64,000 nucleotides of DNA from IMGVR_UViG_3300028676_000003:248001-312000; one strand, 5' to 3'. Shown: positions 20,559 to 55,409, counted from the first letter of the stretch. Notes: generated by a model from the letters alone, not told the origin. A program made the numbers and translations.

Positions 20559-20590
20559 TTGACTTATAAGAAAAAAGTTAGTACCTTTGT
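20559..20590 (+). promoter_or_regulatory. Bacteroidota sigma70-type promoter (TTG-N20-TACCTTTG) driving tRNA array 1
   Basis: TTG at 20559 and TACCTTTGT at 20582. The same 23-nt offset recurs at 29464/29487, 49350/49373 and 50543/50566, and about 25 TAcctTTGt copies precede genes across the window. Confidence 0.8.
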
Positions 20591-20642
20591 ATAACATTTA
20601 GAAATAAGTGTATATTTATAAACAAACAATAAACTAAAAATT

Positions 20643-20717
20643 ATGAAAACTTTAGCAAGCTTATTAGTCATTTTATTATGTTCACTAGTCGTGAACAGGG
20701 TGGGTTATGCCTGTTAA
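20643..20717 (+). CDS. leader peptide 1 (MKTLASLLVILLCSLVVNRVGYAC), Leu/Val/Cys-rich attenuator
   Basis: 24-aa ORF between promoter and terminator; 12 of 24 residues are L, V or C. Confidence 0.8.
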   Translation: MKTLASLLVILLCSLVVNRVGYAC

Positions 20718-20744
20718 GTAGAGTTATTTTTACTTAAACAATAT

Positions 20745-20781
20745 AATCCCATCTATTAAAATTAGATGGGATTTTTTTTTT
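20745..20781 (+). terminator. intrinsic terminator/attenuator of array 1
   Basis: AATCCCATCTA-loop-TAGATGGGATT plus T-run. Leader segment GGGTGGGTTAT (20698-20708) can pair with the 5' arm. Confidence 0.85.
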
Positions 20782-20789
20782 ACATATAT

Positions 20790-20872
20790 GCCGTGGTACC
20801 AAAGTGGTTGAATGGGGTGGTCTGCAAAACCATTAGCGAAAGCTCTCGTCGGTTCGAATCCGACCCACGGTT
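20790..20872 (+). tRNA. tRNA-Cys(GCA) with a long variable arm
   Basis: Cloverleaf, loop CTGCAAA, variable hairpin AGCGAAAGCT, T-loop TTCGAAT. Confidence 0.85.
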
Positions 20873-20886
20873 CAAAAAAGAGTATT

Positions 20887-21261
20887 ATGAATGAAATAGA
20901 AATCAAAAAAGACTTATATAAGTCTAAAGCAATGGCTAAATTTAGTCATTACAAAGCTGGTGAATTGTTTTACAATGTTGAACTGATAGACGGAATATAT
21001 CAATTCCCAATCTCAACAGTAGAAGATAAAGAAACTGAAGTGCTTTACGAAGTTAAGGTTGTTTCAAATAACATAGATGGTGAAAAGGCTTCTAAACAAG
21101 CAGAGCCTATCAAGATTATTGTTAATGAGAAACAATTATCAGAAGACTTAGGAGAAACTGAATTTGCTAATGAAATTAAGGGTTCTGAGTTGATTAGATG
21201 GATATTCAAAGCTATCAAGGCTGAAAAGATAAGAAAAATTGGTACCAAGCCAGTTCGTTAA
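20887..21261 (+). CDS. hypothetical protein
   Basis: Start reassigned to ATG 20887 because the track start lies inside tRNA-Cys. Confidence 0.6.
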   Translation: MNEIEIKKDLYKSKAMAKFSHYKAGELFYNVELIDGIYQFPISTVEDKETEVLYEVKVVSNNIDGEKASKQAEPIKIIVNEKQLSEDLGETEFANEIKGSELIRWIFKAIKAEKIRKIGTKPVR

Positions 21262-21315
21262 AACGGAGAAATAATTGGGTATCAAGGATAAAATAGGTAA
21301 CTCAGGTTACCATTT

Positions 21316-21387
21316 GGGAGTGTAGCTCAGAGGAAGAGCGGTTGTGTTACATACAACAGGTCGGGATTTCAAAATTCCCCGTTCCCA
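21316..21387 (+). tRNA. tRNA-Val(TAC)
   Basis: Stem GTTGT/ACAAC, loop GTTACAT. Confidence 0.85.
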
Positions 21388-21565
21388 CAAAAATAACGTA
21401 AACTAAAAAATACTGAATATGGATTTTAATTGTGTATATTGCAAAAAGTCTCACGGGGTTATGACAATAGTTGACGGAAATATGGTTCATCTATCCTGCT
21501 TGAAAGATTATATTGCTGAAAATGAGTATGATAGTGAAGTAGAAGAAATTCTTGAAGAATAAATC

Positions 21566-21639
21566 GTCGAGGTGGTGAAATTGGTAAACACGGTAAGTTC
21601 AAACCTTACATGCTGAGGGTTCGAGTCCCTTCTTCGATA
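21566..21639 (+). tRNA. tRNA-Leu(CAA), short variable loop
   Basis: GTAAG-TTCAAAC-CTTAC, Leu-type D arm, variable region only ATGCT. Confidence 0.85.
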
Positions 21640-21748
21640 CTGTTCTTGCACAAAGTGTAAGGGACTTGGGTGGGTGACTAGAGTCAATATGTTCACTGCA
21701 ATCGCAATCCCTAAAGTTGCGCTCCCCATCTACGGGATGGGGTATTTT

Positions 21749-21822
21749 GGCCCTGTAGCCCAATTGGTAGAGGCATCAGATTTAAATCCTGTATAGTGTG
21801 GGTTCGAATCCCATCGGGGCTA
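21749..21822 (+). tRNA. tRNA-Leu(TAA), short variable loop, weak anticodon stem
   Basis: TCAGA-TTTAAAT-CCTGT, canonical T arm. Confidence 0.7.
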
Positions 21823-21879
21823 CTACATCTCCCTAGGGAGAAGGTGCTGGTTGATGAGCTGACCTTATAGCTCATATTT

Positions 21880-21959
21880 GTCGGGGTGATGAAATTGGTA
21901 GACATGAGGTCCTTAAACGGCCTTGCTTAAGCATACGGGTTCGAGTCCCGTTCCCGATA
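21880..21959 (+). tRNA. tRNA-Leu(TAA)
   Basis: AGGTC-CTTAAAC-GGCCT, variable arm TGCTTAAGCA. Confidence 0.9.
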
Positions 21960-21974
21960 CTAAAAAGAAATAAA

Positions 21975-22190
21975 ATGGGAAAAATATTAGAAATAACAGA
22001 AAAGGTACCACAGGTTGCAAAGCTTCCTGATGGAGTTTACAACGGAACTTGGGGTGGTTATGTAATTGAACTTGTTTATCAAGGTAAAACATTTCAACTT
22101 AAAACAGAAGAAGGTGTCAGAGGTATGGGATTCAAGGTAGTTGTATTTGTAAAGGACGGAGTAGCAACCTATGAAGAAATAAATAACTAA
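21975..22190 (+). CDS. hypothetical protein
   Basis: ORF between tRNAs. Confidence 0.6.
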   Translation: MGKILEITEKVPQVAKLPDGVYNGTWGGYVIELVYQGKTFQLKTEEGVRGMGFKVVVFVKDGVATYEEINN

Positions 22191-22196
22191 AATAAT

Positions 22197-22270
22197 GCAC
22201 GTGTAGCCCAATTGGAAGAGGCGATGGTCTTAGAAGCCATACAGTGTGGGTTCGAATCCCATCATGTGTA
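22197..22270 (+). tRNA. tRNA-Leu(TAG), short variable loop
   Basis: ATGGT-CTTAGAA-GCCAT. Confidence 0.85.
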
Positions 22271-22539
22271 CAAAAACAAAGAAAATGGGAATATTAAAAA
22301 TTCATAATGCAGGATTAACAGGGTATTATTTGGAGCAAACTCTTGGTGGTAAACCTCTTATAGATTCAGGACTTATAATTAGTCAAGAAGACGATGATTC
22401 AGATGAACCATCAACAATTGAGCTTCATTATACTGATGAAAAGGACCTAGAAGCTAAGGTATCAATAATTATTGAAATGTTAACTGATAAATAATAGGAA
22501 ATGTCATTTATTTGTTATACCTTTGTAAAAAATTAAGCT

Positions 22540-22950
22540 ATGGATAATGTAATACTACTAGATTTAGACGGAGTTCTGATAACAACGAAGCCTTGGGAAT
22601 CAGATGTAATTATTGAAGACGGATTTGCCCAATTCAACGAAAAATCAGTTGCAAAGCTAAACGAATACTTGGAATCAACAGGCTACGATATAGTATTAAC
22701 TTCATCAAGACGTTATACGACTGAAATAGACCAAATGAACGAGTTTTTCAAGGCAAGAGGTATCAAAGGACAGATAATTCAATATCTTCCGTTATATGAC
22801 CTAGATTTGCGTTATTCAAGATATGATGAGGTAATGAGATTCATTATGAAGCATAGGCCTGAGAATTATTTGGTAATTGATGATGATAAGTCTCTTGCGA
22901 AGTTAGGTAACAACAAATGGATTAAAACTGACCCAATGATTGGTTTATGA
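22540..22950 (+). CDS. HAD-family phosphatase (HAD_SAK-like)
   Basis: LLDLDGVL, IVLTSSRR, R..E, YLVIDDD, TDP..GL. Confidence 0.8.
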   Translation: MDNVILLDLDGVLITTKPWESDVIIEDGFAQFNEKSVAKLNEYLESTGYDIVLTSSRRYTTEIDQMNEFFKARGIKGQIIQYLPLYDLDLRYSRYDEVMRFIMKHRPENYLVIDDDKSLAKLGNNKWIKTDPMIGL

Positions 22951-23183
22951 TAAGATATTTTTGCGATAACAAAAGACATATTGTATGTTTACCTTATTCC
23001 GTTGAAAATCTTCATAAGATGGCTGAGGACTTGGGTTTAAACAGAAGATGGTTTCATAAAGGGAAAAATAACAATTCTCATTATGATATGCCGATAAAAG
23101 AAATAGCAGTTATTACTGCAAAGTGTGAATTAGTAACCAGTGAAGAAATAGTTGATATTATACGTGGAAGATTTACAAAATAA
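22947..23183 (+). CDS. DUF4031-like protein
   Basis: LH.MA..LGL.RRWFH.......HYD.P. Confidence 0.6.
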   Translation: MIRYFCDNKRHIVCLPYSVENLHKMAEDLGLNRRWFHKGKNNNSHYDMPIKEIAVITAKCELVTSEEIVDIIRGRFTK

Positions 23184-23348
23184 GTTAGAAATACTAAATA
23201 GCAATTATTGGGAACATTTCAAGTTTGCTAAGGACTTGGCAGGGTTTTTAGCCCATGACCATCCTAGAAGACGAAGAATAGAAGAGAAGTTAAACGAAAT
23301 GGTTGATGAAATTCAAGAATTGAATCGACTATTACAAAATAAAAACAA

Positions 23349-23424
23349 GGGAGTATAGCTCAGTTGGTTCAGCAGCGTCTCGTTTACACCGAGAAGGTCG
23401 GGGGTTCGAATCCCTCTACTCCTA
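23349..23424 (+). tRNA. tRNA-Val(TAC)
   Basis: TCTCG-TTTACAC-CGAGA. Confidence 0.9.
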
Positions 23425-23428
23425 CTAA

Positions 23429-23507
23429 AAGATAGTTTCAGCAAGCAAACGGTTAAAAATTTGTCTCATAAACAAACTGAGTGGTTCAATCCCACAAAAC
23501 TATCTTG
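23429..23507 (+). ncRNA. CAGCAA-stem element (skipping-rope-like) enclosing a Met(CAT) anticodon arm and a T arm
   Basis: AAGATAGTT.CAGCAA ... TTTGT-CTCATAA-ACAAA, GTGG-TTCAATC-CCAC ... AACTATCTT-G. Confidence 0.6.
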
Positions 23508-23512
23508 AATTT

Positions 23513-23595
23513 GGCCGAGTGGTGGAATTGGTAGACACGCTAGTTTAAGAAGCTAGTGCTGTAATGGCATGCGGGTTCGAGTCCCGCCTTGGTCA
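23513..23595 (+). tRNA. tRNA-Leu(AAG), A34
   Basis: CTAGT-TTAAGAA-GCTAG, Leu D arm, long variable arm. Confidence 0.85.
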
Positions 23596-23617
23596 CAAAC
23601 GTTTTAAATAAATTATT

Positions 23618-24886
23618 ATGGAAAATACAGAATATGTCTGTGTAATGTTCCCTTATCCTTCAGGAGATGGATTACATGTTGGGCATGTCTATAACTACGC
23701 AATCGTCGATAGTTATTGCCGATGGAAACGTTACAATAAAATTCCAGTCTTTCAACCATTTGGATATGATTCATTTGGATTGCCAGCGGAAAACTACGCA
23801 AAAAAGGTCGGTAGAGACCCAAAAGAAGTCACTTACGAAAATATCGCAAAGTTCCGTAAACAAATGGAACGAATGAACACTCAATATGAAGAATTATTAG
23901 TTACATCTGATGAATCTTACTATGTATGGAGTCAAAGATTATTTACTGAATTACATAGCAGAGGGTTAGCCTACCAAAAGATGGGTCCTGTAAATCATTG
24001 TTCAAGCTGTGAAACAGTCTTGGCTAATGAACAAGTTAAGGACGACCATTGTGAAAGATGTGGTACAAGAGTAGAAATCAAAGATTTAAACCAATGGTAT
24101 TTCAAAATTACTGACTATAAGCAACGATTAATTGATAACTTGGATAAGATTGATTATCCTGAGAAAACAAAGAAACAGCAATTGCATTGGTTAGAGAACT
24201 TAAATGATTGGTGTGTTTCAAGACAGCGAAAATGGGGAACTCCAATACCGTTGATTGATTCAGAAGACACCTTAGATACATTCGTTGATAGTTCATTCTA
24301 TTTTTTAAGATACTTGGACCCAAATAACTTAGAAGAATTGGTTGATATCAATAAAGCTAAGCAAGTTGACTTATATGTTGGTGGAAACGAACATGCTTGT
24401 ATGCACTTGATTTATGCTAGGTTTATCACGATGTTCTTACATGATTGTGGTTATATCCCTTTTGATGAGCCTTTTAAGAAGGTAATTCACCAAGGAATGA
24501 TTACTCATAATGGAGAAAAAATGTCCAAGTCAAAAGGCAACGTAATAAATCCTGATGATTATGACCCTGATGAATTGAGGTTATATTCAATGTTTATCGG
24601 CCATTATTTTGACGGTGGAGATTGGGATGATTCAAAGATTAGCGGAATTAGACGTTTTATTGGAAGATTTGGTAAATGGACAAATGAATCTACTCAAGAA
24701 GGTGAAACTATTGACTTAACAGCATTTAAAGAGACTATTAATGGTTATGTAATATCGTTTAAGTTCAATAAGGTTGTTAGTACATTCATGGAGTTTTACA
24801 ACAAGAATAAGAACAAAACATTAAGTGTATCAACAGCTAACGATTTGATTGAAATCTTACGTGTGTTTGCACCGAGTTTTAAATAA
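23618..24886 (+). CDS. leuS: minimal leucyl-tRNA synthetase (no CP1 editing domain, truncated C-terminus)
   Basis: MFPYPSG.GLHVGH, GYDSFGLPAEN, Zn knuckle, DWCVSRQR.WGTPIP, DTFVDSS.YFLRY, GG.EHA.MHL.YARF and KMSKS; only 422 aa. Confidence 0.9.
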   Translation: MENTEYVCVMFPYPSGDGLHVGHVYNYAIVDSYCRWKRYNKIPVFQPFGYDSFGLPAENYAKKVGRDPKEVTYENIAKFRKQMERMNTQYEELLVTSDESYYVWSQRLFTELHSRGLAYQKMGPVNHCSSCETVLANEQVKDDHCERCGTRVEIKDLNQWYFKITDYKQRLIDNLDKIDYPEKTKKQQLHWLENLNDWCVSRQRKWGTPIPLIDSEDTLDTFVDSSFYFLRYLDPNNLEELVDINKAKQVDLYVGGNEHACMHLIYARFITMFLHDCGYIPFDEPFKKVIHQGMITHNGEKMSKSKGNVINPDDYDPDELRLYSMFIGHYFDGGDWDDSKISGIRRFIGRFGKWTNESTQEGETIDLTAFKETINGYVISFKFNKVVSTFMEFYNKNKNKTLSVSTANDLIEILRVFAPSFK

Positions 24887-29463: not shown

Positions 29464-29495
29464 TTGACTTATGTACTAACTTTTAGTACCTTTGT
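29464..29495 (+). promoter_or_regulatory. promoter upstream of leader 2
   Basis: TTGACT ... TACCTTTGT, followed by ATATTTAT at 29498. Confidence 0.8.
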
Positions 29496-29530: not shown

Positions 29531-29614
29531 ATGAGAACACTTACAAACATATTTGATTTTGCATTTACAGCAGCCGAAGAGGATTACTCTTGGGAAGGTC
29601 AACTAGTGTCGTAA
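29531..29614 (+). CDS. leader peptide 2 (MRTLTNIFDFAFTAAEEDYSWEGQLVS), Phe/Asp/Ala/Glu-rich attenuator
   Basis: 27-aa ORF; codons 8-18 (FDFAFTAAEED) are 10/11 F, D, A or E. Confidence 0.8.
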   Translation: MRTLTNIFDFAFTAAEEDYSWEGQLVS

Positions 29615-29640
29615 GTTAAGTAATATTAACAATACAATCA

Positions 29641-29674
29641 AGAGTCTGACCATAAAACGTCAGACTTTTTTTTT
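29641..29674 (+). terminator. intrinsic terminator/attenuator of array 2
   Basis: AGTCTGAC-loop-GTCAGACT plus T-run. Leader segment GGTCAACT (29597-29604) can pair with the 5' arm. Confidence 0.8.
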
Positions 29675-29749
29675 GGAAAAAATGTTCTTTAAAATTTTGA
29701 AATTAAGAAAATAAGTATTACCTTTGTATCATCAAAAAATATAAGGATT

Positions 29750-30205
29750 ATGAAAAAGTTTTTACAATATTTAACGCTTAGGGATTTTAATGATGAATTT
29801 TTATTTCCATCACCAATTGGACATATTGTTTTTGTGATATTATTTGTAATATTCGTAGGAACATGTAGTCATAAAAGACAAAATGAAGAACCAAAGGTAA
29901 ACCATATCATAATGGAAGATGCTGTACAAGTTGGTGATTCAATCGAAGCTCCATGGGCTGAGAAAACAGATTCAACGGAAGTCGAGTTTAGTGTTCCAAA
30001 AGGAACATATTGGTCAAGCGAAGAAACAAAGTTACCAAGAGGTATTGTTAAAGTAACTGACCACGCTCATGGTAGTAATGGTAAAAGTGATAACAAAAGT
30101 GATAATTATGTTACTATAAAGGGAACCGATGGTCAGTTAACTATTGTTAGAGATGTTGAGATTGATTTATATTTGAATCTTCAAGTTGGAGATACAATTA
30201 AATAA
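29750..30205 (+). CDS. membrane-anchored hypothetical protein
   Basis: One hydrophobic helix; own promoter at about 29719. Confidence 0.6.
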   Translation: MKKFLQYLTLRDFNDEFLFPSPIGHIVFVILFVIFVGTCSHKRQNEEPKVNHIIMEDAVQVGDSIEAPWAEKTDSTEVEFSVPKGTYWSSEETKLPRGIVKVTDHAHGSNGKSDNKSDNYVTIKGTDGQLTIVRDVEIDLYLNLQVGDTIK

Positions 30206-30277
30206 AAAAAATATCAAAAAACATTAGGTTATTAAATTTAAAAGTTATACCTTTGTACTATCAAAATAACGAAAGAT

Positions 30278-30562
30278 ATGATAAGAATACTAGTAGAATT
30301 TGAGTTTATTCCTGAGCATACAGAAGAAGCTAAAAAGCTTATAAAAGAGTTAGCAATCAAATCAGCTCAAGAAAAAGGATGTGTGATGTATCATGCACTT
30401 GAAAGTCTTAATGATGAAAATTCAGTGATACTTTATGAAAGTTTCGCAGATAAAGAAGCACAAGACTTCCATAAAACGACAAGTCATTACAAGGAAATCT
30501 TGCAAGAGAAATTACCAAGCTTGATTAAAGAACGTAAGGTTCGTTTCTTGGAAATATTATAA
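30278..30562 (+). CDS. antibiotic biosynthesis monooxygenase (ABM/YgiN-like) protein
   Basis: S..E.GC..Y ... LYE.F.D.EA...H..T.HY. Confidence 0.85.
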   Translation: MIRILVEFEFIPEHTEEAKKLIKELAIKSAQEKGCVMYHALESLNDENSVILYESFADKEAQDFHKTTSHYKEILQEKLPSLIKERKVRFLEIL

Positions 30563-30567: not shown

Positions 30568-30640
30568 GGTACCTTAGCTCAGTTGGTAGAGCACCGCACT
30601 GAAGATGCGGGTGTCGCTGGTTCGAATCCAGCAGGTACCA
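30568..30640 (+). tRNA. tRNA-Phe(GAA)
   Basis: CCGCA-CTGAAGA-TGCGG. Confidence 0.9.
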
Positions 30641-30700
30641 CAAATGTGACTGAGTTTTTCTATGGCTCACAAAGGGATGCATCCCTACATAGAAGCAATT

Positions 30701-30773
30701 GGTACTGTAGCTCAATTGGTAGAGCACTCGTCTGAAGAGCGGGGTGTTGTGGGTTCGAGTCCCACTGGTACCA
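30701..30773 (+). tRNA. tRNA-Phe(GAA)
   Basis: CTCGT-CTGAAGA-GCGGG. Confidence 0.9.
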
Positions 30774-30836
30774 CAAACTCATTAATGCCGTTGATGGTGT
30801 GCTCAAGAGTATAAAAACCGCAGTAACCATCATTTT

Positions 30837-30909
30837 GGTCTATTCGTCTAGTCGGTCAGGACGTGCCCCTTTCACGGGTAAAACACGGGTTCGAATCCCG
30901 TATAGACTA
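30837..30909 (+). tRNA. tRNA-Glu(TTC)
   Basis: TGCCC-CTTTCAC-GGGTA. Confidence 0.9.
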
Positions 30910-30911
30910 CT

Positions 30912-31059
30912 GGGAATGTACGTTCAGCGGTCCGATTGGCTCTTAGGAGATGGTTTAAAACAATTGGGAAGTGTGTCAAGAAATTGATTGGGTAAAAACA
31001 CTATCAGAACGACTCCCGTGAAGGGGAGAAAGTCGCAGGTTCGAATCCTGTCGTTCCTA
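30912..31059 (+). ncRNA. tRNA-like RNA with an ~80-nt D-loop and a 6-nt anticodon loop
   Basis: GGGAATG/CGTTCCT acceptor, CGTTC/GAACG D stem, CTCCC-GTGAAG-GGGAG, T arm TTCGAAT. Confidence 0.6.
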
Positions 31060-31129
31060 CTATGAAGTACCTACGGCAATAGGTATAACAGAGCCAACGA
31101 ATTTGAATTGCCGTTTGAAGGTGTTGGTA

Positions 31130-31200
31130 GAAGCGTTCGTCTAGTGGACCAGGACACAGCCAATGGGGCTGAAACACAGGTTCGAGTCCTGTACGCTTTG
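31130..31200 (+). ncRNA. Glu-type tRNA body with a 5-nt anticodon loop
   Basis: GAAGCGT/ACGCTTT, D arm GTCTAGTGGACCAGGAC, CAGCC-AATGG-GGCTG. Confidence 0.65.
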
Positions 31201-31290
31201 CAATTAAGAGCACGTGGAAGTACGATAGCCCCCACAGTATAGAAAAAAACTAAGGTATCGTTGACTTCATGGTGGAAAGAAACCATATTT

Positions 31291-31362
31291 GGTCCTATCG
31301 TCTAGGGGTCAGGACACTAGGTTTTCAGCCTATAAACGAGGGTTCGATTCCCTCTAGGACTA
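31291..31362 (+). tRNA. tRNA-Glu(TTC)
   Basis: CTAGG-TTTTCAG-CCTAT. Confidence 0.85.
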
Positions 31363-31364
31363 CA

Positions 31365-31420
31365 AGAGACTGTTACTAATTTATAGGACTCCGAGTGAGG
31401 GGAAGCGTAGAATTAGAATT
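31365..31420 (+). repeat. inter-tRNA motif, copy 1 (AGACTGTT..TAATTYATAG...GCGTAGAATTA)
   Basis: Further copies at 52482-52545 and 52826-52881. Confidence 0.75.
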
Positions 31421-31423
31421 TTT

Positions 31424-31496
31424 GGAGCAGAGGTGTTGATGGTAACATACTCCCCTGTCACGGGATAGATTGAGGGTTCGACTCCCTTGTGCTCCG
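31424..31496 (+). tRNA. tRNA-Asp(GTC)
   Basis: CTCCC-CTGTCAC-GGGAT. Confidence 0.85.
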
Positions 31497-31725: not shown

Positions 31726-31731
31726 CAAATT

Positions 31732-33618: not shown

Positions 33619-33627
33619 CAAAATATT

Positions 33628-46055: not shown

Positions 46056-46404
46056 TAGAGCCATTTGGTTCTTTGAGTTGATACTTGGTAAAGGAATAAG
46101 GGGCCTAGCATTTTGGCCCTTTATCTTTGTACCATCGACAACAGTCGTTGATGAGGTTCTGCTAAATCACGAACGTATTCATTTAAAGCAACAACTCGAA
46201 ATGCTGATTATACCGTTTTATATATGGTATTTGATTGCATTAAGGCGAAAGGGTTATATGGGTATTAGCTTTGAAAAAGAAGCATACGCCAATGAGAGAG
46301 ACTTAGGTTATTTAACCAAAAGAAAGAATTATTCATTTTTAAAATATCAAAATGAAAATAGAAATAAACAAAATAAAAACAGTACCAAAGGGTTTAGGTT
46401 TTAA
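46039..46404 (+). CDS. HExxH-motif protein
   Basis: LNHERIHLKQQ ... ISFEKEAY. Confidence 0.65.
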   Translation: MLIVSDRAIWFFELILGKGIRGLAFWPFIFVPSTTVVDEVLLNHERIHLKQQLEMLIIPFYIWYLIALRRKGYMGISFEKEAYANERDLGYLTKRKNYSFLKYQNENRNKQNKNSTKGFRF

Positions 46405-47527
46405 TTTCTGCGTTTACGGTGAACCATCTGAAGAAATTCAAAAATGGTGTAAGTATTGGGATTTTAAAACAGAACCATCAGGTCCATATACCAATATTAT
46501 CCTTACAGATGATGTTGACATTAAAAATATCTTTGTTGGTCCTAAGAAATACCATTATATTGATGGTTTTAGCCCAAATCTTAACAAGAACCTACATGTA
46601 GGTCACTTATCAAATCTTGTATTAGCAAATGCGTTCCAACACTTGGGTCTTGGAGATGAATTTATCTCGATATTTGGTGATACGCTAAATGGTGAGGTTA
46701 CCAAAGATGAGGCTTATTACAATTTCCTTAAAATGACCAAGTTTTTTGGTTATAAGGTTGATAAAGAGTATTTTGCTTCTGAAATGAAGCTTGATGAAAA
46801 GCTTTTAAAAGACGGCCAAGGTGACTATGAAGGTTCAAAGGTATTTGACTTAGAAGATGAACAAATCGTAGGTATTAAATCCAGCGGAGCAACAACATAC
46901 TTCTATCAAGACGTAGCACTAGCTAATGAATTGAGTGCTTCTACCTTGTATCTAACTGGCTTGGAGCAAGAAAATCATTTTAATTCGCTTAAGAAGTTAT
47001 TTCCAAATAACAATCATATCGGTCTTGGACTTGTTTATCTTGATGGTAAAAAGATGTCTAGCAGTGAAGGAAATATCATTTATATGAATGAGTTCATTCA
47101 TGGACTTATGGAAAAGTTTAATCATGATGCTGGTGTTGTAGCTAATATTATTATTGGACAAATCCTTAAATCTGAGCCAAAGTCAAAGAAAACAATTGAT
47201 TCTAGTCTTATAGATAATCCAAGATTATCATTAGGATTATACTTGAGCTACACGTTAGCACATGTTAAGAGTTGTGGTGTCACAACCAAGCAGATTTATA
47301 AGTATCAATCTAAAAAGTTACAATTTGCTGAATTAAGAGCTAAAACAAACTTATCACCAAATGTCTTATTTGATGAATTGGTGAGCCATTGTAAACATAT
47401 CAACGCTTTATATGAGACTCATTATATCAAGGGGAATGAAGAGAACATTGAGTTGTTTTCTAATTTGATTTCTGACTTGGAGTTGGGTATGTTGAGAGTG
47501 GGTATGTATTCAGTAGAAAAAGTTTAA
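46352..47527 (+). CDS. argS: arginyl-tRNA synthetase (compact)
   Basis: FSPNLNK.LHVGH, KS.G.TTY..QD, EQ..HF, KMSSSEG, YL.Y..A; C-term LGM...G. Confidence 0.85.
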   Translation: MKIEINKIKTVPKGLGFNFCVYGEPSEEIQKWCKYWDFKTEPSGPYTNIILTDDVDIKNIFVGPKKYHYIDGFSPNLNKNLHVGHLSNLVLANAFQHLGLGDEFISIFGDTLNGEVTKDEAYYNFLKMTKFFGYKVDKEYFASEMKLDEKLLKDGQGDYEGSKVFDLEDEQIVGIKSSGATTYFYQDVALANELSASTLYLTGLEQENHFNSLKKLFPNNNHIGLGLVYLDGKKMSSSEGNIIYMNEFIHGLMEKFNHDAGVVANIIIGQILKSEPKSKKTIDSSLIDNPRLSLGLYLSYTLAHVKSCGVTTKQIYKYQSKKLQFAELRAKTNLSPNVLFDELVSHCKHINALYETHYIKGNEENIELFSNLISDLELGMLRVGMYSVEKV

Positions 47528-50253: not shown

Positions 50254-50326
50254 TCCGTGTTAGAGCAGTCAGGTAGCTCGCTCCCGTGTGAGGGAGAGGT
50301 CAGGGGTTCGAATCCTTTACACGGTA
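50254..50326 (+). ncRNA. initiator-like tRNA body with a 6-nt anticodon loop
   Basis: 1:72 mismatch, D stem GAGC/GCTC, CTCCC-GTGTGA-GGGAG. Confidence 0.65.
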
Positions 50327-50542
50327 CTAATTTTTACTAGACATATTAATTAAATTCGGGAGCAATACATATAGTATTGAATAGGTGGAAACCCTTATGC
50401 TCCCACTAGGCTTCGTAATTAGGAAATATGGATGCGGTTAAAAGAAACGACCAAAGATAAGGTTTCACGGCAAAAGGCTCTATTCGTTAACCAGCGAGCT
50501 TTTACTTATCTTTGGAAATTTCAAAAAAAAATGACAAAAGGC

Positions 50543-50574
50543 TTGCTTTTTACAAAAATAGTTAGTACCTTTGT
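50543..50574 (+). promoter_or_regulatory. promoter upstream of leader 3
   Basis: TTG ... TACCTTTGT; ATATTTAT at 50625. Confidence 0.8.
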
Positions 50575-50665: not shown

Positions 50666-50773
50666 ATGACAACAAGTACCACATATCAAACGCAAAAACA
50701 ACAACCTAAAGGCGGGAAGCCTTATGGCTTGGCTGGGTGTGTCAACAACTTGTTTGACTTAGTTACAATATAA
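50666..50773 (+). CDS. leader peptide 3 (MTTSTTYQTQKQQPKGGKPYGLAGCVNNLFDLVTI), Thr/Tyr/Gln/Lys/Pro/Gly-rich attenuator
   Basis: 35-aa ORF; codons 2-21 are 19/20 T, Y, Q, K, P or G. Confidence 0.85.
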   Translation: MTTSTTYQTQKQQPKGGKPYGLAGCVNNLFDLVTI

Positions 50774-50797
50774 TTAGTAGTAATACTGATTTTGTAG

Positions 50798-50832
50798 ACC
50801 CAGCTTAATGTAAAAATTAGGCTGGGTTTTTT
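50798..50832 (+). terminator. intrinsic terminator/attenuator of array 3
   Basis: ACCCAGCTTAAT-loop-ATTAGGCTGGGT plus T-run. The leader carries an identical GGCTGGGT at 50731-50738. Confidence 0.85.
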
Positions 50833-50837: not shown

Positions 50838-50910
50838 CGGGGGATAGCTTATATGGTAAAGCACTGACCGTTGGGGTCAGGAGAATGAGGTTCGAGTACT
50901 CATCTACCGA
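50838..50910 (+). tRNA. Pro-type tRNA body with an atypical anticodon loop (CGTTGGG)
   Basis: C1:G72, A73; CTGAC-CGTTGGG-GTCAG lacks U33. Confidence 0.6.
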
Positions 50911-51024
50911 CAAACACAAAACGGGTTAACCTCTGCGAACAGAAAGTACGAGGATGGAACAATTGGAAAGATATCGCTAGTTGCAAAGGGTTCGATTCCC
51001 TATAACCTGACAAAAGAATTAATC

Positions 51025-51315
51025 ATGAGTAAAGGAAATTGTGAATTATGTGAACGAGAGAAGGAATTGACCTTTCATCACCTAATACCTCAAATCAACC
51101 ACTCGAAGAATGCCTTTCAAAGGTTATTCAGTAAAGAGGATATGAAAACAAGAGGTCTTATGTTATGTAGAGAGTGTCATTCAATGATTCATCGAACGCT
51201 AGACAACAAAACACTCGGATTAGAGTACAATACAAAAGAATTATTACTCGGACATGAAGGAATCTTCAAGTTTGTAGAATGGGTTAAAAAACAAAACAAA
51301 AAAGTAAAAAAATAG
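51025..51315 (+). CDS. HNH-family protein
   Basis: CELC, TFHHLIP, LCRECHSMIH. Confidence 0.75.
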   Translation: MSKGNCELCEREKELTFHHLIPQINHSKNAFQRLFSKEDMKTRGLMLCRECHSMIHRTLDNKTLGLEYNTKELLLGHEGIFKFVEWVKKQNKKVKK

Positions 51316-51387
51316 AACAAATGAAAAATATTAAACGTATAAAGAATAAACAGTAACCACCTTCAAATCATGAGGGTGATATGATAT

Positions 51388-51458
51388 GCCCTCTAAGCTT
51401 TAAGGTGAAGCACGATACTTTTAATATCGGGAAAATGGTCCAATACCATTAGGGGGTA
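51388..51458 (+). tRNA. tRNA-Lys(TTT)
   Basis: CGATA-CTTTTAA-TATCG; divergent T loop. Confidence 0.75.
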
Positions 51459-51477
51459 CAAGTTTTAATAAACGAAT

Positions 51478-51550
51478 GCCCTCGAAACATTGCTGGCGAT
51501 GTACTCCGCTTTTAACGGAGGAATAATTGGTTCGATTCCAATCGGGGGTA
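51478..51550 (+). tRNA. tRNA-Lys(TTT)
   Basis: CTCCG-CTTTTAA-CGGAG. Confidence 0.85.
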
Positions 51551-51569
51551 CAAGACGAAAGTCGAATAC

Positions 51570-51644
51570 TCTCCTATGGCTGACTGGGTAAAGCACCATA
51601 CTTTTAATATGGCATCAATGTCGGTTCGAACCCGACTGGGAGAA
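51570..51644 (+). tRNA. tRNA-Lys(TTT)
   Basis: CCATA-CTTTTAA-TATGG. Confidence 0.85.
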
Positions 51645-51706
51645 CAAATTAAGTTTTTAACCTTTACTTTTGTTTAAAAGCGCATATTATTGTAATAAAA
51701 TTTATT

Positions 51707-52147
51707 ATGAAAATATGTGGAACATGTAAAGTACCGAAATCCGAAGAAGATTTCAACAAGAATAAAAGCAAACCAGATGGTTTAAATAGCATTTGTAGAG
51801 AATGTAGTAACAAACGGTCTAAACGATATTATACTGAGAATAAAGAACATCATATTGGTGTTATTAAAGATAGGAAGGTTAAAACATTAATCGATACTAG
51901 AACAAAAATTTTTGAGTATTTTAAAGAAAACCCGTGTATTGATTGTGGTGAAACAGACCCAATAGTACTAGAATTTGACCATCGAGACGATGTTATCAAA
52001 GAGAGAAATATTGCTGATTTAGTCGGAAATAGTTGTTCTTGGACGATGATTAAGAAAGAGATTGACAAGTGTGATGTAAGGTGTGCAAATTGCCACAGAA
52101 GAAGAACAGCAATCCAACAAGGTTGGTATAAAGGAGTTATATTATGA
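51707..52147 (+). CDS. HNH homing-endonuclease-like protein
   Basis: N-term CxxC Zn finger, CIDCG....LEFDH, KC...CANCHR. Confidence 0.8.
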   Translation: MKICGTCKVPKSEEDFNKNKSKPDGLNSICRECSNKRSKRYYTENKEHHIGVIKDRKVKTLIDTRTKIFEYFKENPCIDCGETDPIVLEFDHRDDVIKERNIADLVGNSCSWTMIKKEIDKCDVRCANCHRRRTAIQQGWYKGVIL

Positions 52148-52400
52148 CAGAACAAGAAAAGCACATAGCAGATAGTATGACATTATTTGCCGCTAACATA
52201 GCAGATTTTGAAGTAGGTGATTTAGTAAAAGAGGCGAATGGTATCGTGTCCAAGATAACGAACAAAACCATCAACTCTATTGAAGTGGAAATTGACAAGC
52301 TACCACTTAAAAAAAATGCGTCAAAAGAAAATATCGGGATTAAAGCAAGACAATGGTTTACCATGGAAAATTTTAATCGTAGATTTAAAAAGTAATTATT

Positions 52401-52476
52401 CGGGTGGTATAGGAGCCAGGTTTATCTAGTCGCACTTGGACTGCGAATCACGTGGGTTCGAATCCCACTCACCCGA
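52401..52476 (+). tRNA. tRNA-Pro(TGG)
   Basis: TCGCA-CTTGGAC-TGCGA. Confidence 0.85.
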
Positions 52477-52481
52477 CGAGA

Positions 52482-52545
52482 AGAGACTGTTATTAATTCA
52501 TAGAACACCATACTTAGTAAGTACTGGAAGCGTAGAATTAAAAAT
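52482..52545 (+). repeat. inter-tRNA motif, copy 2
   Basis: AGAGACTGTTATTAATTCATAG...GAAGCGTAGAATTAA. Confidence 0.75.
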
Positions 52546-52547
52546 TA

Positions 52548-52623
52548 CGAGATGTGGACTAATTGGCTAAGTCGCTTGCTTTGGGAGCAAGACATCGTGC
52601 AGGTTCGAGTCCTGTCATCTCGA
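52548..52623 (+). tRNA. tRNA-Pro(TGG)
   Basis: CTTGC-TTTGGGA-GCAAG. Confidence 0.9.
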
Positions 52624-52745
52624 CATACTGGGTTTTGATACCGATTTACCGTTAGGAAACGGAGCGTGAAGGGGTTCGTCAAACAAACTCTGCTCCCGAA
52701 ACAGAATTGAAGTGGGGTATGACGGATGCAGAGAGAGGCATATAT

Positions 52746-52817
52746 GCGGGAGTAGCTCAATGGTAGAGTTCCTGATTTCCAATCAGGTTGTTGCGAGTTC
52801 GAGCCTCGTCTTCCGCT
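52746..52817 (+). tRNA. tRNA-Gly(TCC)
   Basis: CCTGA-TTTCCAA-TCAGG. Confidence 0.9.
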
Positions 52818-52825
52818 CGAAGATA

Positions 52826-52881
52826 AGACTGTTGCTAATTCATAGGGTACCAAGGTAAAAACTGCGTAGAATTAGAAAATT
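52826..52881 (+). repeat. inter-tRNA motif, copy 3
   Basis: AAGACTGTTGCTAATTCATAG...TGCGTAGAATTAG. Confidence 0.75.
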
Positions 52882-52955
52882 GCGACCATCGCCTAGTTGG
52901 TATGGCATCTGACTTCCAATCAGAAATAGGGCGGGTTCGAGACCCGCTGGTCGCT
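52882..52955 (+). tRNA. tRNA-Gly(TCC)
   Basis: TCTGA-CTTCCAA-TCAGA. Confidence 0.9.
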
Positions 52956-52963
52956 CAAAATAT

Positions 52964-53038
52964 TGGCCTATGGTGTAATTGGCAACACTACTGTTTTTGG
53001 TGCAGTCATTCAAGGTTCGAGTCCTTGTGGGCCAACCA
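52964..53038 (+). tRNA. tRNA-Gln(TTG)
   Basis: ACTGT-TTTTGGT-GCAGT, encoded CCA. Confidence 0.9.
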
Positions 53039-53042
53039 ATAT

Positions 53043-53113
53043 TGGGGATTGATGTAATGGTAGCATACTTGGTTTTGAGCCAAACTGTATAAGTTCGACC
53101 CTTATATCCCTAA
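53043..53113 (+). tRNA. tRNA-Gln(TTG)
   Basis: CTTGG-TTTTGAG-CCAAA. Confidence 0.8.
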
Positions 53114-53116
53114 CTA

Positions 53117-53188
53117 TGTCAAGTAGTTTAATTGAGAAAACTCCCTGCGTTGGGCGGGGCGATTTGGGTTTGAATCCCGATTTGACAG
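53117..53188 (+). tRNA. Gln-like tRNA with an atypical anticodon loop (CGTTGGG)
   Basis: TGTCAAG/TTTGACA-G; CCCTG-CGTTGGG-CGGGG. Confidence 0.55.
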
Positions 53189-53197
53189 CAAAGATAA

Positions 53198-53257
53198 AAA
53201 ATGATTTCAGCAAATATTATCATCAAACTTTTAATTTGAAACAGATATATCATTTTG
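53198..53257 (+). ncRNA. CAGCAA-stem element enclosing a Lys(TTT) anticodon arm
   Basis: AAAATGAT..CAGCAA ... TCAAA-CTTTTAA-TTTGA ... ATCATTTT-G. Confidence 0.6.
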
Positions 53258-53265
53258 TTCTTTTT

Positions 53266-53344
53266 GGGTCTATGGCAGAGCGGTCGATTGCGACAGACTG
53301 TAAATCTGTTATTCCACACCGTGGTTCGAATCCACGTGGGCCCA
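53266..53344 (+). tRNA. tRNA-Tyr(GTA)
   Basis: ACAGA-CTGTAAA-TCTGT. Confidence 0.9.
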
Positions 53345-53404
53345 CTGGCGAGTATGTTGTTTTATGATTTTCAGGAAAAGGCGTTAGAGAAAAAAATCAA
53401 ATTT

Positions 53405-53486
53405 GGGGTATCGCCAAAGTAGGAGAGTTGGGACGGTCTGTAACACCGTTGCGAAAGCTGAGTAGGTTCGATTCCTACATGCCTCA
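53405..53486 (+). tRNA. tRNA-Tyr(GTA)
   Basis: ACGGT-CTGTAAC-ACCGT with a variable arm. Confidence 0.85.
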
Positions 53487-53549
53487 CTGAGCAGTTGTGG
53501 TCTGCTTGCAATTAAATTCCACCGTTTGATTCACGTAACGAATCACTAT

Positions 53550-53622
53550 GCTTCCGTAGCTCAATTGGTGGAGCATCTCATTTGTAACGAGAAGGTCGCA
53601 GGTTCGAAGCCTGTCGGGAGCT
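53550..53622 (+). tRNA. tRNA-Thr(TGT)
   Basis: TCTCA-TTTGTAA-CGAGA. Confidence 0.85.
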
Positions 53623-53773
53623 CAATAAGCAGGATATCGTAAGAAACGTCCACATAGGTTAATTACCTGTTGAAGAAAGGATAAAGACAGGGGCTCCTTT
53701 TAAGTCCTGCTGACGTTATTAAAAATCGTTGCACGTAGCGAACCAACCTAGTTATACGATTCTAGGTAAAATT

Positions 53774-53846
53774 GCCGATGTAGCTCAGTAGGTAGAGTAC
53801 CTGTTTTGTAAACAGATTGTCGCAGGTTCGATTCCTGTCATCGGCT
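53774..53846 (+). tRNA. tRNA-Thr(TGT)
   Basis: CCTGT-TTTGTAA-ACAGA. Confidence 0.9.
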
Positions 53847-54451
53847 CAAACATAAAAAAAAATTGATATGAAAGGACTTAAATTTATTCCACTAGTAGAA
53901 GTAAGTGAGGAAACCAAGGCTAAATTGGACCTTATGATGAAGAAAAGAGATGAGCGAATTCAATCAATGATTGATGATTATCGAAATGGTAGATTTGCAG
54001 AAGAAATGAAAAACCTGCCAAAAAATTAGGTTATTAAAAAGTTTATTTGTACCTTTGTAAGGTAATAATTAAACCGAACAAAATGACAAGAGAAGATTTT
54101 AGAATTGTACAAAAGTATTATGCAACTAGTAGCCTAGTTATGATTTTTTATGGTAGTGTTATCATTGAAAGTGTTGAAATCTATAAGAATTATTCAACGT
54201 TTGAAGATGAAGCAGACAAAGCGGCTAGACTAGCTGAGATGGGTAAAGAAGGTGGTAAAAAAGCTAAGCCAAAACCAATCAAGATGAAGTCTAAAAAAGA
54301 CGACCGTACCAAAGATGAAATTAGTGCTGAATGTGAGAGCAAAATCAAAAAATACATTGCGGCTAATAGCCAAAAATAAAAAACCGCTGGCGAAAGCCGA
54401 AGTGGCGTAATGATATCAGTCACGAGATGGTAAGCGGTGCCATCTCAAAAT

Positions 54452-54524
54452 GCGAGTGTAGCTCAGTTGGCAGAGCACCTGATTACCAATTAGGTTGTCG
54501 TGGGTTCGAATCCCATCACTCGCT
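54452..54524 (+). tRNA. tRNA-Gly(ACC), A34
   Basis: GCG-start, U73 Gly body; CCTGA-TTACCAA-TTAGG. Confidence 0.85.
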
Positions 54525-54562
54525 CTCTTGACTTTTTGGTACCATCTAGTATATTTATATAC

Positions 54563-55219
54563 ATGGGAAGAAAAGTAAAAAATATACATTACATTTATAA
54601 AATAACGTGTAATGTGACAGGAAGGTATTATGTAGGAATGCGTAGTACTTGTAAAGAAGATGATAATTACATGGGTTCAGGAAAAGTTCTCAGATATTCA
54701 ATACGAAAGTATGGTGTTGAAAACCATACAAAAGAAATTCTGAGTTATCATGAAACACGTGAGTTATTAGTTGAAGCTGAGATATTAGCTATTACTGCTG
54801 ATATGATTACAGATAAGAACTGTATGAATATTAGATTAGGTGGTTCAGGTGGTTTCACAAGTGAAGAAGCGAAAAAAGGTAGACTAGCGACAGATAAGAT
54901 TTTATTTGAAAAATTTGGTGATGATTTTAGAATAATAATAAACCAAAATTATCATAATAATATGTCTGAAACTGAAAAAATTGCTTTTAGTAATAAAGTA
55001 AAAGTTGGTCAACAAAGTAATGGCTATAATAATATAACTTTCAAGAATAAAAGGCATTCAGATAAAACAAAACAATTAATGTCTAAACCAAAAAATATTG
55101 GTGAAACAAATTCACAATTCGGAACTTGTTGGATAACTAAGGAAGGCATTAATAAGAAGATTAAGAAAGAAGACCTTGATACATTTATCACTGATGGATG
55201 GGTTCAAGGAAGAAAATAA
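54563..55219 (+). CDS. GIY-YIG homing endonuclease (Seg-like, NUMOD3-type tail)
   Basis: YIYKIT..VTGRYYVG, YMGSG, E, N.R.GG.GG, KRHSDKTK.LMS, WV.GR. Confidence 0.85.
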   Translation: MGRKVKNIHYIYKITCNVTGRYYVGMRSTCKEDDNYMGSGKVLRYSIRKYGVENHTKEILSYHETRELLVEAEILAITADMITDKNCMNIRLGGSGGFTSEEAKKGRLATDKILFEKFGDDFRIIINQNYHNNMSETEKIAFSNKVKVGQQSNGYNNITFKNKRHSDKTKQLMSKPKNIGETNSQFGTCWITKEGINKKIKKEDLDTFITDGWVQGRK

Positions 55220-55224
55220 CATAA

Positions 55225-55345
55225 GGGGGTATTAAAATATTGGCAAACGGCATTCTGCAATTTAAAAAAGAATGATTACTGCAAAATTCAAAAAAACAAT
55301 CTGTAACATTGAAATTAATACGTGGTTCGATTCCCGTTGCCCCCA
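55225..55345 (+). ncRNA. Tyr(GTA)-like tRNA interrupted between the D and anticodon arms by a CTGCAA-stem element with its arms in reversed order
   Basis: GGGGGTA/TGCCCCC-A acceptor; insert CATTCTG...AGAATG.TTACTGCAA; CAAT-CTGTAAC-ATTG; T loop TTCGATT. Confidence 0.6.
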
Positions 55346-55356
55346 CAAAACTTTTT

Positions 55357-55409
55357 TAAAAATAACTCATCATTTATTTGGTGGGTTATTTTTTTTTGCA
55401 TACCTTTGT
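55357..55409 (+). terminator. terminator-promoter cassette closing array 3
   Basis: Near-identical to 39241-39292. Confidence 0.75.

Follow-up and report, generated by a model that had tools for sequence, protein, structure and literature searches.

The three tRNA arrays and the features preceding them

The region analyzed here (the window, i.e., the whole stretch of 64,000 nucleotides, IMGVR_UViG_3300028676_000003:248001-312000) is part of a 368.5-kb contig of a huge peat-soil phage with Bacteroidota-type promoters. The search carried out with ARAGORN revealed 40 tRNA genes in the window, all of them on the + strand, 37 of which were confirmed by Rfam. In agreement with the preliminary description, most of them are grouped by isotype in three arrays, and a cassette consisting of a promoter, a short ORF, an intrinsic terminator and a tRNA array occurs three times (Table 1). 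Each ORF embeds a block of codons built from the amino acids of its own array, and each leader carries, further 3', a copy or mimic of the 3' arm of its terminator.

Table 1. Features of the three cassettes (positions counted from the first nucleotide of the window)
Feature	Position	Strand	Details
Promoter 1	20559-20589	+	TTGACT (20559-20564); Bacteroidota-type -7 box TACCTTTG (20582-20589)
Leader ORF 1	20643-20717	+	24 codons; block at codons 7-17 (20661-20693), 9 of 11 residues Leu/Val/Cys
Antiterminator strand 1	20697-20705	+	AGGGTGGGT; mimics the terminator 3' arm, pairs with the 5' arm at -10.8 kcal/mol (rank 0.03 among 32 leaders); switch at codons 16-18
Intrinsic terminator 1	20745-20781	+	11-bp stem (20745-20773; -14.7 kcal/mol) plus T-run; tRNA-Cys 17 nt later
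tRNA array 1	20790-23596	+	Cys, Val, Leu x4, Val, Leu; internal HAD-domain ORF (22540-22950) with its own -7 box at 22518
LeuRS-like protein	23618-24886	+	Truncated class I synthetase core, 422 aa, directly after array 1 (TIGR00396 at 399 bits, below its cut-off)
Promoter 2	29464-29494	+	TTGACT (29464-29469); -7 box (29487-29494)
Leader ORF 2	29531-29614	+	27 codons; block at codons 8-18 (29552-29584), 10 of 11 residues Phe/Asp/Ala/Glu
Antiterminator strand 2	29585-29592	+	Weak (-5.8 kcal/mol); alternative at 29597-29604
Intrinsic terminator 2	29640-29677	+	11-bp stem (29640-29669; -13.4 kcal/mol) plus T-run
Two inserted ORFs	29719-30562	+	151-aa ORF (29750-30205; -7 box at 29719) and 94-aa ABM-domain ORF (30278-30562; -7 box at 30248)
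tRNA array 2	30568-33701	+	Phe x2, Glu x3, Asp x2, Ala x2, plus Gln(ctg) and unusual tRNAs
GluRS/GluQRS-like protein	34105-34902	+	Catalytic core, 265 aa, downstream of array 2
Promoter 3	50543-50573	+	TTGCTT (50543-50548); -7 box (50566-50573)
Leader ORF 3	50666-50773	+	35 codons; block at codons 2-21 (50669-50728), 19 of 20 residues Thr/Tyr/Gln/Lys/Pro/Gly
Antiterminator strand 3	50730-50739	+	Contains an exact 8-mer copy (GGCTGGGT) of the terminator 3' arm; duplex -15.1 kcal/mol (rank 0.00); switch at codons 19-21
Intrinsic terminator 3	50797-50832	+	Terminator 50797-50828 (-19.3 kcal/mol) plus T-run; tRNA-Gln 10 nt later
tRNA array 3	50838-54525	+	Gln, Lys x3, Pro x2, Gly x2, Gln x3, Tyr x2, Thr x2, Gly; HNH ORF (51025-51315) inside

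However, some points of the preliminary description have to be corrected. The sequence ATATTTAT on its own is not enriched (9 found, 9.9 expected), whereas the real promoter signal is TACCTTTG, which occurs 29 times in the window against 2.7 expected, nearly always on the + strand and upstream of ORFs and cassettes. This corresponds to the -7 element (TAnnTTTG) of Bacteroidota sigma-A-type promoters, and a TTG lies 17-18 nt upstream of it in the three cassettes. Moreover, cassette 2, which had been described like the other two, is not adjacent to its array, since two ORFs, each with its own -7 box, lie between them; it is interesting that in the relatives L041 and L013, which harbor homologous leaders, the terminator lies 19-124 nt from tRNA-Phe. 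Lastly, the proteins described as LeuRS and GluRS-like are a truncated LeuRS-like protein and a catalytic core, respectively, and array 2 also holds a Gln(ctg) tRNA and odd tRNAs.

Leader composition and array content

The preliminary description predicted that another array, for Arg/Ser/Ile/Met/His/Asn/Trp, would be preceded by a leader rich in those residues. Such a cassette does exist in the same genome, 13.6 kb upstream of the window (genome 234285-234386); its block is made of N/I/H/M/S/W/R and it precedes the Ser/Trp/Asn/His/Ile/Met/Arg array. Among the 192 strong terminators of the 368.5-kb genome, the pattern of -7 box, 15-45-codon ORF and terminator occurs only four times, in all four cases at tRNA arrays.

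We then checked whether the composition of the leaders tracks the content of the arrays in related phages, and found 49 such cassettes on 12 related contigs, including the published but unannotated LR745206. In 33 cassettes chosen by a rule blind to composition, the fraction of leader residues belonging to the amino-acid set of the cognate array is 0.40, against 0.17±0.02 after shuffling, and the best 10-residue window scores 7.27 against 3.16±0.32; in both tests 0 of 20,000 shuffles were as high. A held-out set of 16 cassettes gave the same picture (0.44 against 0.24±0.03 and 7.62 against 4.02±0.51, again 0 of 20,000). Furthermore, 110 of 111 array isotypes occur in their own leader, against 60% for non-cognate leaders, and codon counts scale with the tRNA gene copy number (Spearman 0.47; 0 of 5,000 within-cassette shuffles). 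The matching of synonymous codons is only modestly above expectation; indeed, in-set codons are readable by the anticodons of the array slightly more often than codon usage predicts (326 against 311 of 362; z=3.05). It must be underlined, however, that several tRNA groups have no matched leader, that is, Met-Pro-Met at genome 224978, the two Cys tRNAs, Leu/Phe at 36848-37151, and the Met tRNAs of L011/L017.

The ORFs of the three cassettes start with ATG and lie 44-100 nt downstream of a -7 box; across the 49 cassettes their median length is 29 aa. None of 48 leaders has an SD-like motif, and the start contexts are A-rich, as expected for Bacteroidota-type initiation. The terminators (hairpins of -12 to -19 kcal/mol with T-runs) start 23-27 nt after the stop codon, and the median gap from terminator to first tRNA is 18 nt (35 nt or less in 32 of 49 cassettes), which leaves no room for another promoter.

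Antiterminator pairing and ribosome position

The analysis of the leader segment located just after the block revealed that it pairs with the 5' arm of the terminator and co-varies with it. The duplex between a leader and the 5' arm of its own terminator averages -11.2 kcal/mol, against -7.3 kcal/mol for non-cognate pairs (0 of 20,000; Wilcoxon p=6.6e-6), and the held-out set gives -9.9 against -7.4±0.55 (0 of 20,000). Homologous leaders show compensatory changes: in L013 the segment and the arm are GCCAAAGG/CCTTTGGC, where the window has a different pair, and the same kind of change is shown by L006, L060 and L062. However, in about 6 of 32 leaders the cognate pairing is no better than the non-cognate ones, and the antiterminator of cassette 2 is weak.

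The folding of the leaders with the ribosome at different positions showed that the probability that the 5' arm is already paired before the 3' arm exists is 0.74 with the A-site in the block and 0.20 three or more codons past it, with all 32 cassettes going the same way (p=8e-7) and the switch point falling at the end of the block. On the other hand, at equilibrium the full-length leader favours the terminator (P about 0.95) whatever the position of the ribosome; antitermination must therefore be kinetic, which cannot be shown by folding. An anti-antiterminator or pause hairpin is only weakly indicated (0.66 against 0.53 for shuffled sequence; p=2e-5).

A possible demand-sensing control of phage tRNA genes

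Taken together, the four in silico tests named or implied in the preliminary description (the fourth leader, the tracking in relatives, the antiterminator and the folding) came out in favour of its interpretation. Hence, we consider it likely that each cassette is a ribosome-mediated (leader-peptide) transcription attenuator gating a tRNA array, even though, in the absence of expression data (the only RNA-library matches are two uninformative 151-nt contigs inside array 3), the translation of the ORFs, the efficiency of termination, the read-through caused by stalling and the physiological trigger are inferred. According to this model, host RNA polymerase starts at a Bacteroidota-type promoter and transcribes a short, Shine-Dalgarno-less, A-rich leader, and a ribosome translates the mini-ORF, whose codons about 8-18 sample every isotype encoded in the downstream array. 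If all those aminoacyl-tRNAs are plentiful, the ribosome runs over the segment just 3' of the block (codons about 19-25), the terminator hairpin forms and transcription stops 10-20 nt before the first tRNA. If any sampled tRNA is scarce, cleaved or uncharged, the ribosome stalls inside the block, and the downstream segment stays free and pairs with the 5' arm of the terminator as that arm emerges; the terminator cannot form, and the polymerase reads into the array and, where present, the synthetase-like gene behind it. Because the products are the sensed molecules themselves, the circuit would be a negative-feedback homeostat for tRNA supply, with one multi-input sensor serving each array. In this genome, however, cassette 2 can be bypassed by the downstream promoters and array 1 also has an internal -7 box, so that control is leaky or partial. 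That the purpose is to counter anticodon nucleases or starvation is an inference.

Different readings of the same architecture might be proposed. It is possible, although in our opinion unlikely, that the same attenuator reads something other than a tRNA shortage caused by host defence, such as amino-acid starvation or general translational load, or that it acts mainly as a default-ON switch, shut off once translation of the leader becomes efficient, which would make it a temporal or early-infection timer. Indeed, a stalled ribosome cannot tell missing tRNA from uncharged tRNA, the antiterminator strand is free when no ribosome is present, a protective 1:2 hairpin is only weakly supported, and truncated synthetase-like genes sit behind two of the arrays. 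However, extra tRNA genes do not relieve amino-acid starvation, and both the completeness of the match and its proportionality to copy number fit a sensor tuned to the products of the array itself.

Even more doubtful is the idea that the mini-ORF transcripts or their peptides act in trans (as small RNAs released at the terminator, as peptides, or as sinks for particular tRNAs), the terminator simply ending an independent small transcription unit. Attenuator-derived sRNAs and leader peptides with trans roles are known in Sinorhizobium (PMC6614838, PMC7298713), and the leaders share a conserved N-terminus. Nevertheless, given the short gap between terminator and tRNA, the arrays would then have no promoter; in addition, only the composition of the peptides is conserved and not their sequence, and the co-variation between the antiterminator segment and the terminator arm has no role in this model. 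As regards a coincidental occurrence of low-complexity short ORFs upstream of ordinary terminators and tRNA genes, hydrophobic Leu/Val-rich short ORFs such as leader 1 are common by chance, and ATATTTAT is not enriched; however, this possibility is effectively refuted by the permutation tests, including those on held-out genomes, by the finding of the predicted fourth leader and by the restriction of the pattern, in this genome, to tRNA arrays.

The class of mechanism is known, whereas its use on tRNA genes appears to be new. Phages may carry large sets of tRNAs that can replace host tRNAs, as compensation for codon usage or for host tRNA-cleaving defences (e.g., PMC13462974), but such genes appear to have been treated as constitutively or temporally expressed, and no demand-sensing leader was found in full-text literature searches. 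In the multivalent attenuators of the enterobacterial ilvGMEDA, ilvBN and thr operons, a short leader ORF likewise carries regulatory codons for several amino acids, an intrinsic terminator competes with a mutually exclusive antiterminator, and a ribosome stalled on the regulatory codons causes read-through. Those attenuators, however, control amino-acid biosynthesis enzymes and sample 2-3 amino acids, whereas here the controlled genes are tRNAs, the leaders sample up to 7 isotypes, the block is reprogrammed from array to array, a clear 1:2 pause hairpin is not evident, and the system is viral and uses Bacteroidota-type promoters and SD-less initiation. Leader-peptide attenuation is applied to the translation machinery, namely to aminoacyl-tRNA synthetases, in the pheST (pheM leader) attenuator of E. 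coli and in the His-leader upstream of hisS/hisZ in bacilli (PMC2965389); these have a single amino-acid specificity and control protein-coding genes in cellular genomes, while in the phage tRNA genes are the first and main output and truncated LeuRS-like or GluRS-like genes appear only at the far end of two arrays. T-box riboswitches also sense tRNA status and switch between terminator and antiterminator upstream of translation-related genes; yet a T-box binds uncharged tRNA directly, needs no ORF and has a conserved specifier loop and T-box sequence, and Rfam at gathering thresholds found only tRNAs in the window, whereas in the model proposed here sensing goes through a translating ribosome.

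The tRNA-array cassettes and their surroundings

The window (bases 248001-312000) belongs to a single 368,549-bp virus contig, which comes from peat metagenomes and carries 62 tRNA genes, 40 of which lie in the window. The sequence TACCTTTG, a form of the Bacteroidota -7 promoter box TAnnTTTG, occurs 29 times against 2.7 expected, almost always on the + strand ahead of ORFs, whereas an E. coli-type promoter scan performed no better than shuffled sequence (83 against 74±8). The nearest GenBank phage is the unannotated 634,780-bp "uncultured phage" LR745206.

The three cassettes of the preliminary description, each composed of a promoter, a short ORF, an intrinsic terminator and a tRNA array, are present as described. 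Each ORF has a block drawn from the amino acids of its own array, and just 3' of each block lies a copy or mimic of the terminator's 3' arm. However, some details had to be corrected. The motif ATATTTAT, which had been listed as an element of the cassette, is not enriched by itself and is part of the A/T-rich region after the -7 box. Moreover, cassette 2 is separated from tRNA-Phe by two ORFs that have their own -7 boxes, and the protein described as LeuRS is a LeuRS-like core. These two ORFs are not the only possible source of leakiness, since an ORF with the HAD domain of "Swiss Army Knife" RNA-repair proteins, embedded in array 1, has its own -7 box as well; promoters inside or ahead of arrays 1 and 2 thus allow bypass.

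It had also been predicted that another array, located elsewhere, would be preceded by a leader rich in the residues corresponding to its own tRNAs (Arg/Ser/Ile/Met/His/Asn/Trp). The rest of the genome does contain a further tRNA region, and a terminator scan revealed there a 33-codon ORF, followed 27 nt later by a terminator, downstream of which lie Ser, Trp, Asn, Ser, His x2, Ile, Met, Ile, Asn x2, Met, Arg x2 and Ser. Codons 2-20 of this ORF are made almost entirely of N, I, H, M, S, W and R; this is the predicted leader. Among 192 strong terminators on both strands of the whole genome, the pattern formed by a -7 box, a 15-45-codon ATG ORF and a terminator 10-60 nt after the stop occurs at only four loci, that is, the three cassettes of the window plus this one, and all four precede tRNA arrays.

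Not every tRNA group is preceded by a leader. No further leader was found upstream of the Leu/Phe pair of the window or inside array 1, and the Met-Pro-Met tRNAs are preceded by the same -7 box and ATATTTAT motif, followed by about 330 nt with no array-matched ORF (only a 9-codon ORF). Since Rfam finds nothing in that region, it may be a different kind of leader. In the window Rfam gave only tRNAs, and in the upstream region a phage-encoded tmRNA just upstream of the first tRNA region. The tRNA complement itself includes several unusual members (see the table below), among which a tRNA of amber-suppressor type, labelled Pyl by ARAGORN, raises the possibility of TAG read-through or recoding. 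The homing-endonuclease-type ORFs inserted within or next to array 3 suggest mobile-element traffic through the arrays, and the three shortened synthetase-like genes all score below the NCBIfam cut-offs for the full enzymes.

Coordinates of the features discussed in the text (L061 is our handle for the upstream region of the same genome, and L060 that for LR745206)
Feature	Frame	Coordinates	Remarks
Cassette 1, -7 box	window	20582-20589	
Cassette 1, ORF	window	20643-20717	block with 9 of 11 residues from the array's amino acids
Cassette 1, terminator	window	20745-20773 + T-run	first tRNA is Cys, 17 nt on
Cassette 2, -7 box	window	29487-29494	
Cassette 2, ORF	window	29531-29614	block with 10 of 11 residues from the array's amino acids
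Cassette 2, terminator	window	29640-29669	first tRNA is Phe, at 30568
-7 boxes of the two ORFs between cassette 2 and tRNA-Phe	window	29719 and 30248	
Cassette 3, -7 box	window	50566-50573	
Cassette 3, ORF	window	50666-50773	block with 19 of 20 residues from the array's amino acids
Cassette 3, copy of terminator 3' arm	window	50730-50739	exact 8-mer
Cassette 3, terminator	window	50797-50828	first tRNA is Gln, 10 nt on
ORF with HAD domain, inside array 1	window	22540-22950	own -7 box at 22518
LeuRS-like core	window	23618-24886	422 aa
GluRS/GluQRS-like catalytic core	window	34105-34902	265 aa
Weak ArgRS-like remnant	window	46352-47527	
Leu/Phe tRNA pair	window	36848-37151	no leader found upstream
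tRNA-like genes with irregular anticodon loops	window	33534-33619, 39024-39095, 50254-50327, 38732-38850	ARAGORN calls a 4-nt anticodon in one and 2-nt "anticodons" in two; also a 119-nt Rfam tRNA hit that may carry an intron
A34 tRNAs	window	31130 (His-atg), 54452 (Gly-acc), 23513 (Leu-aag)	
HNH and GIY-YIG (SegE-like) homing-endonuclease-type ORFs	window	51025-51315 and 54500-55219	within or next to array 3
RmlD-like reductase	window	24893-25747	gene of cellular type
Protein with an OmpA domain	window	41576-43390	604 aa; gene of cellular type
ABC-transporter permease and ATPase pair	window	43983-45675	genes of cellular type
Examples of the shared leader N-terminus	window	20643-20663, 29531-29551	
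tmRNA (Rfam RF00023, 66 bits)	genome	223383-223757 (L061 1384-1758)	
Promoter and ATATTTAT motif without matched leader	genome	224619-224977 (L061 2620-2978)	precedes the Met-Pro-Met tRNAs
Further tRNA region	genome	224978-239076	
tRNA with anticodon CTA	genome	228804-228879	
Fourth cassette	genome	234285-234442 (L061 12286-12443)	
Fourth cassette, ORF	genome	234285-234386	
Fourth cassette, terminator	genome	234414-234442	
Leader-terminator-array cassettes of LR745206	L060	2741-2857, 21744-21839, 22679-22729	

Leader composition and array content in related contigs

A nucleotide search of cassette 3 against GenBank phages gave no match, and the GluRS-like protein, when used as an anchor, returned only 6 loci. 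Relatives were reached, instead, through the LeuRS-like protein, which retrieved 34 related IMG/VR loci at 60-70% identity, many of them on contigs of 150-520 kb. The analysis of the tRNA regions of four of those contigs revealed that the leaders change with the arrays: an alternating Leu-Ser run precedes Leu/Ser x3/Leu x2, a Leu-Tyr run precedes Tyr/Leu x7, a run of Gln precedes Gln x4, an N/Q/Y block precedes Asn x3/Gln/Tyr/Gln x2, an Ile/Arg block precedes Ile/Arg x3, and a P/R/E/T/V/A block precedes a Glu/Arg/Pro/Thr/Ala/Val array. The same cassettes are harbored by the published LR745206, while the three fetched regions under the handle G007 gave no cassette.

To check whether leader composition follows array content, cassettes were picked by a rule blind to composition, that is, a terminator of -9 kcal/mol or better followed by a tRNA within 450 nt, and the longest 15-60-codon ORF ending just upstream. 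In the discovery set of 33 cassettes (three of which were later judged to be mis-picks, which makes the test conservative), the fraction of leader residues in the array's set is 0.40, against 0.17±0.02 after shuffling, and the best 10-residue window scores 7.27 against 3.16±0.32. A held-out set of 16 cassettes, from LR745206 and three more contigs fetched after the rule had been fixed, gave 0.44 against 0.24±0.03 and 7.62 against 4.02±0.51, respectively. In both sets, 0 of 20,000 shuffles reached the observed value. Moreover, 110 of 111 array isotypes are present in their own leader, against 60% for non-cognate leaders, and codon counts follow tRNA copy number (Spearman 0.47; 0 of 5,000 within-cassette shuffles). 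At the synonymous level the excess of codons readable by the array's anticodons is significant but small (326 against 311 of 362; z=3.05), because most arrays already cover most codons.

As regards the expression context, the median distance from terminator to first tRNA is 18 nt, and 32 of 49 cassettes are at 35 nt or less; those arrays therefore have no other upstream promoter. No leader has an SD-like motif, and the 12 nt before the ATG are A-rich. The leaders share the N-terminal consensus M-[K/R]-[T/N]-x-[N/T]-N-I, and their codons 2-7 are 52% A, against 30% in the rest of the ORF. This fits the SD-less initiation expected in Bacteroidota and a common origin of the cassettes; the cause of the shared start could be common ancestry or selection for an unstructured start region.

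Antiterminator pairing and ribosome position

For each leader, we computed the best duplex between the leader RNA and the terminator's 5' arm. The mean is -11.2 kcal/mol with its own terminator and -7.3 with the terminators of other cassettes (0 of 20,000 column permutations; Wilcoxon p=6.6e-6), and the held-out set gave -9.9 against -7.4±0.55 (0 of 20,000). The pairing segment sits at codons about 19-25 in nearly all leaders, directly after the block. The antiterminator of cassette 2 is weak. Homologous leaders show compensatory change. Indeed, in the F/E/D(A) family, the window and the relatives L041 and L013 have different terminator stems, and the leader segment changes to match; the N/I/L/V/T/M family does the same.

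The effect of ribosome position was explored by masking the RNA up to 12 nt 3' of the A-site codon and folding what had been transcribed before the terminator's 3' arm exists. The probability that the 5' arm is already paired is 0.6-0.87 while the A-site is in the block and 0.02-0.2 beyond it, and in the four cassettes of this genome the switch falls at codons 16-18, 19-20, 19-21 and 17-19. Across 32 cassettes the means are 0.74 and 0.20, always in the same direction (p=8e-7). Equilibrium folding of the complete leader, on the other hand, always favors the terminator (about 0.95) and cannot discriminate between the states; as in the classical trp attenuator, the switch must therefore be kinetic. 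Pairing of the antiterminator strand with upstream leader sequence is only slightly above shuffled controls (0.66 against 0.53). A pause or anti-antiterminator hairpin is not established.

Proposed mechanism and comparison with known attenuators

On the basis of these data, we propose that the cassettes are stall-dependent attenuators. A ribosome delayed on any block codon would leave the downstream strand free to capture the terminator's 5' arm, and the polymerase would read into the array, whereas a ribosome that passes the block would cover or separate that strand, and transcription would end before the first tRNA. Because the output is the sensed tRNAs, this would be negative feedback on tRNA supply, with one OR-gated sensor per array. 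In the absence of transcript or ribosome data, the proposal rests on sequence and folding; the one RNA library with matches, a peat metatranscriptome, holds two exact 151-nt contigs inside array 3 and none on the leader, which neither supports nor refutes the model. The trigger is inferred, and different possibilities might be invoked, such as host tRNA cleavage, host shut-off, codon-usage mismatch or starvation.

We can further speculate, and we regard it as somewhat more likely than not, that a clade of huge Bacteroidota-infecting phages has evolved a modular, reprogrammable family of multi-input leader-peptide attenuators, each monitoring, codon by codon, the supply of exactly the aminoacyl-tRNAs encoded in the array behind it and switching that array on only on demand. 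If this idea was correct, it would represent the first case of attenuation controlling tRNA genes and a direct tRNA-supply homeostat in a virus. It is quite interesting that tRNA gene expression is usually seen as growth-rate or promoter controlled, whereas here a virus appears to close a feedback loop directly on tRNA availability, using the ribosome as the sensor. It would also give a functional reason for the grouping of tRNA genes by isotype in huge-phage genomes, each group being one regulatory unit, and it suggests that phages measure translational capacity during infection, an issue which bears on host tRNA-cleaving defences and on codon-usage mismatch. In addition, dozens of unannotated short ORFs in published huge-phage genomes, such as LR745206, can be annotated, and the leaders would be natural examples of programmable multi-codon attenuators, with up to seven inputs in about 15 codons, which makes them attractive parts for synthetic biology.

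Full-text literature searches found no account of leader-peptide control of tRNA genes or of phage tRNA arrays, and one paper notes how narrowly leader-peptide systems had been documented (PMC2965389). The logic itself, however, is already known. The proposed device is not a T-box, given that Rfam detected only tRNAs in the window, and it would work like the multivalent ilv and thr attenuators and like pheST, five of the defining features that could be examined being present; it departs from them in that the regulated genes do not encode biosynthetic enzymes or synthetases.
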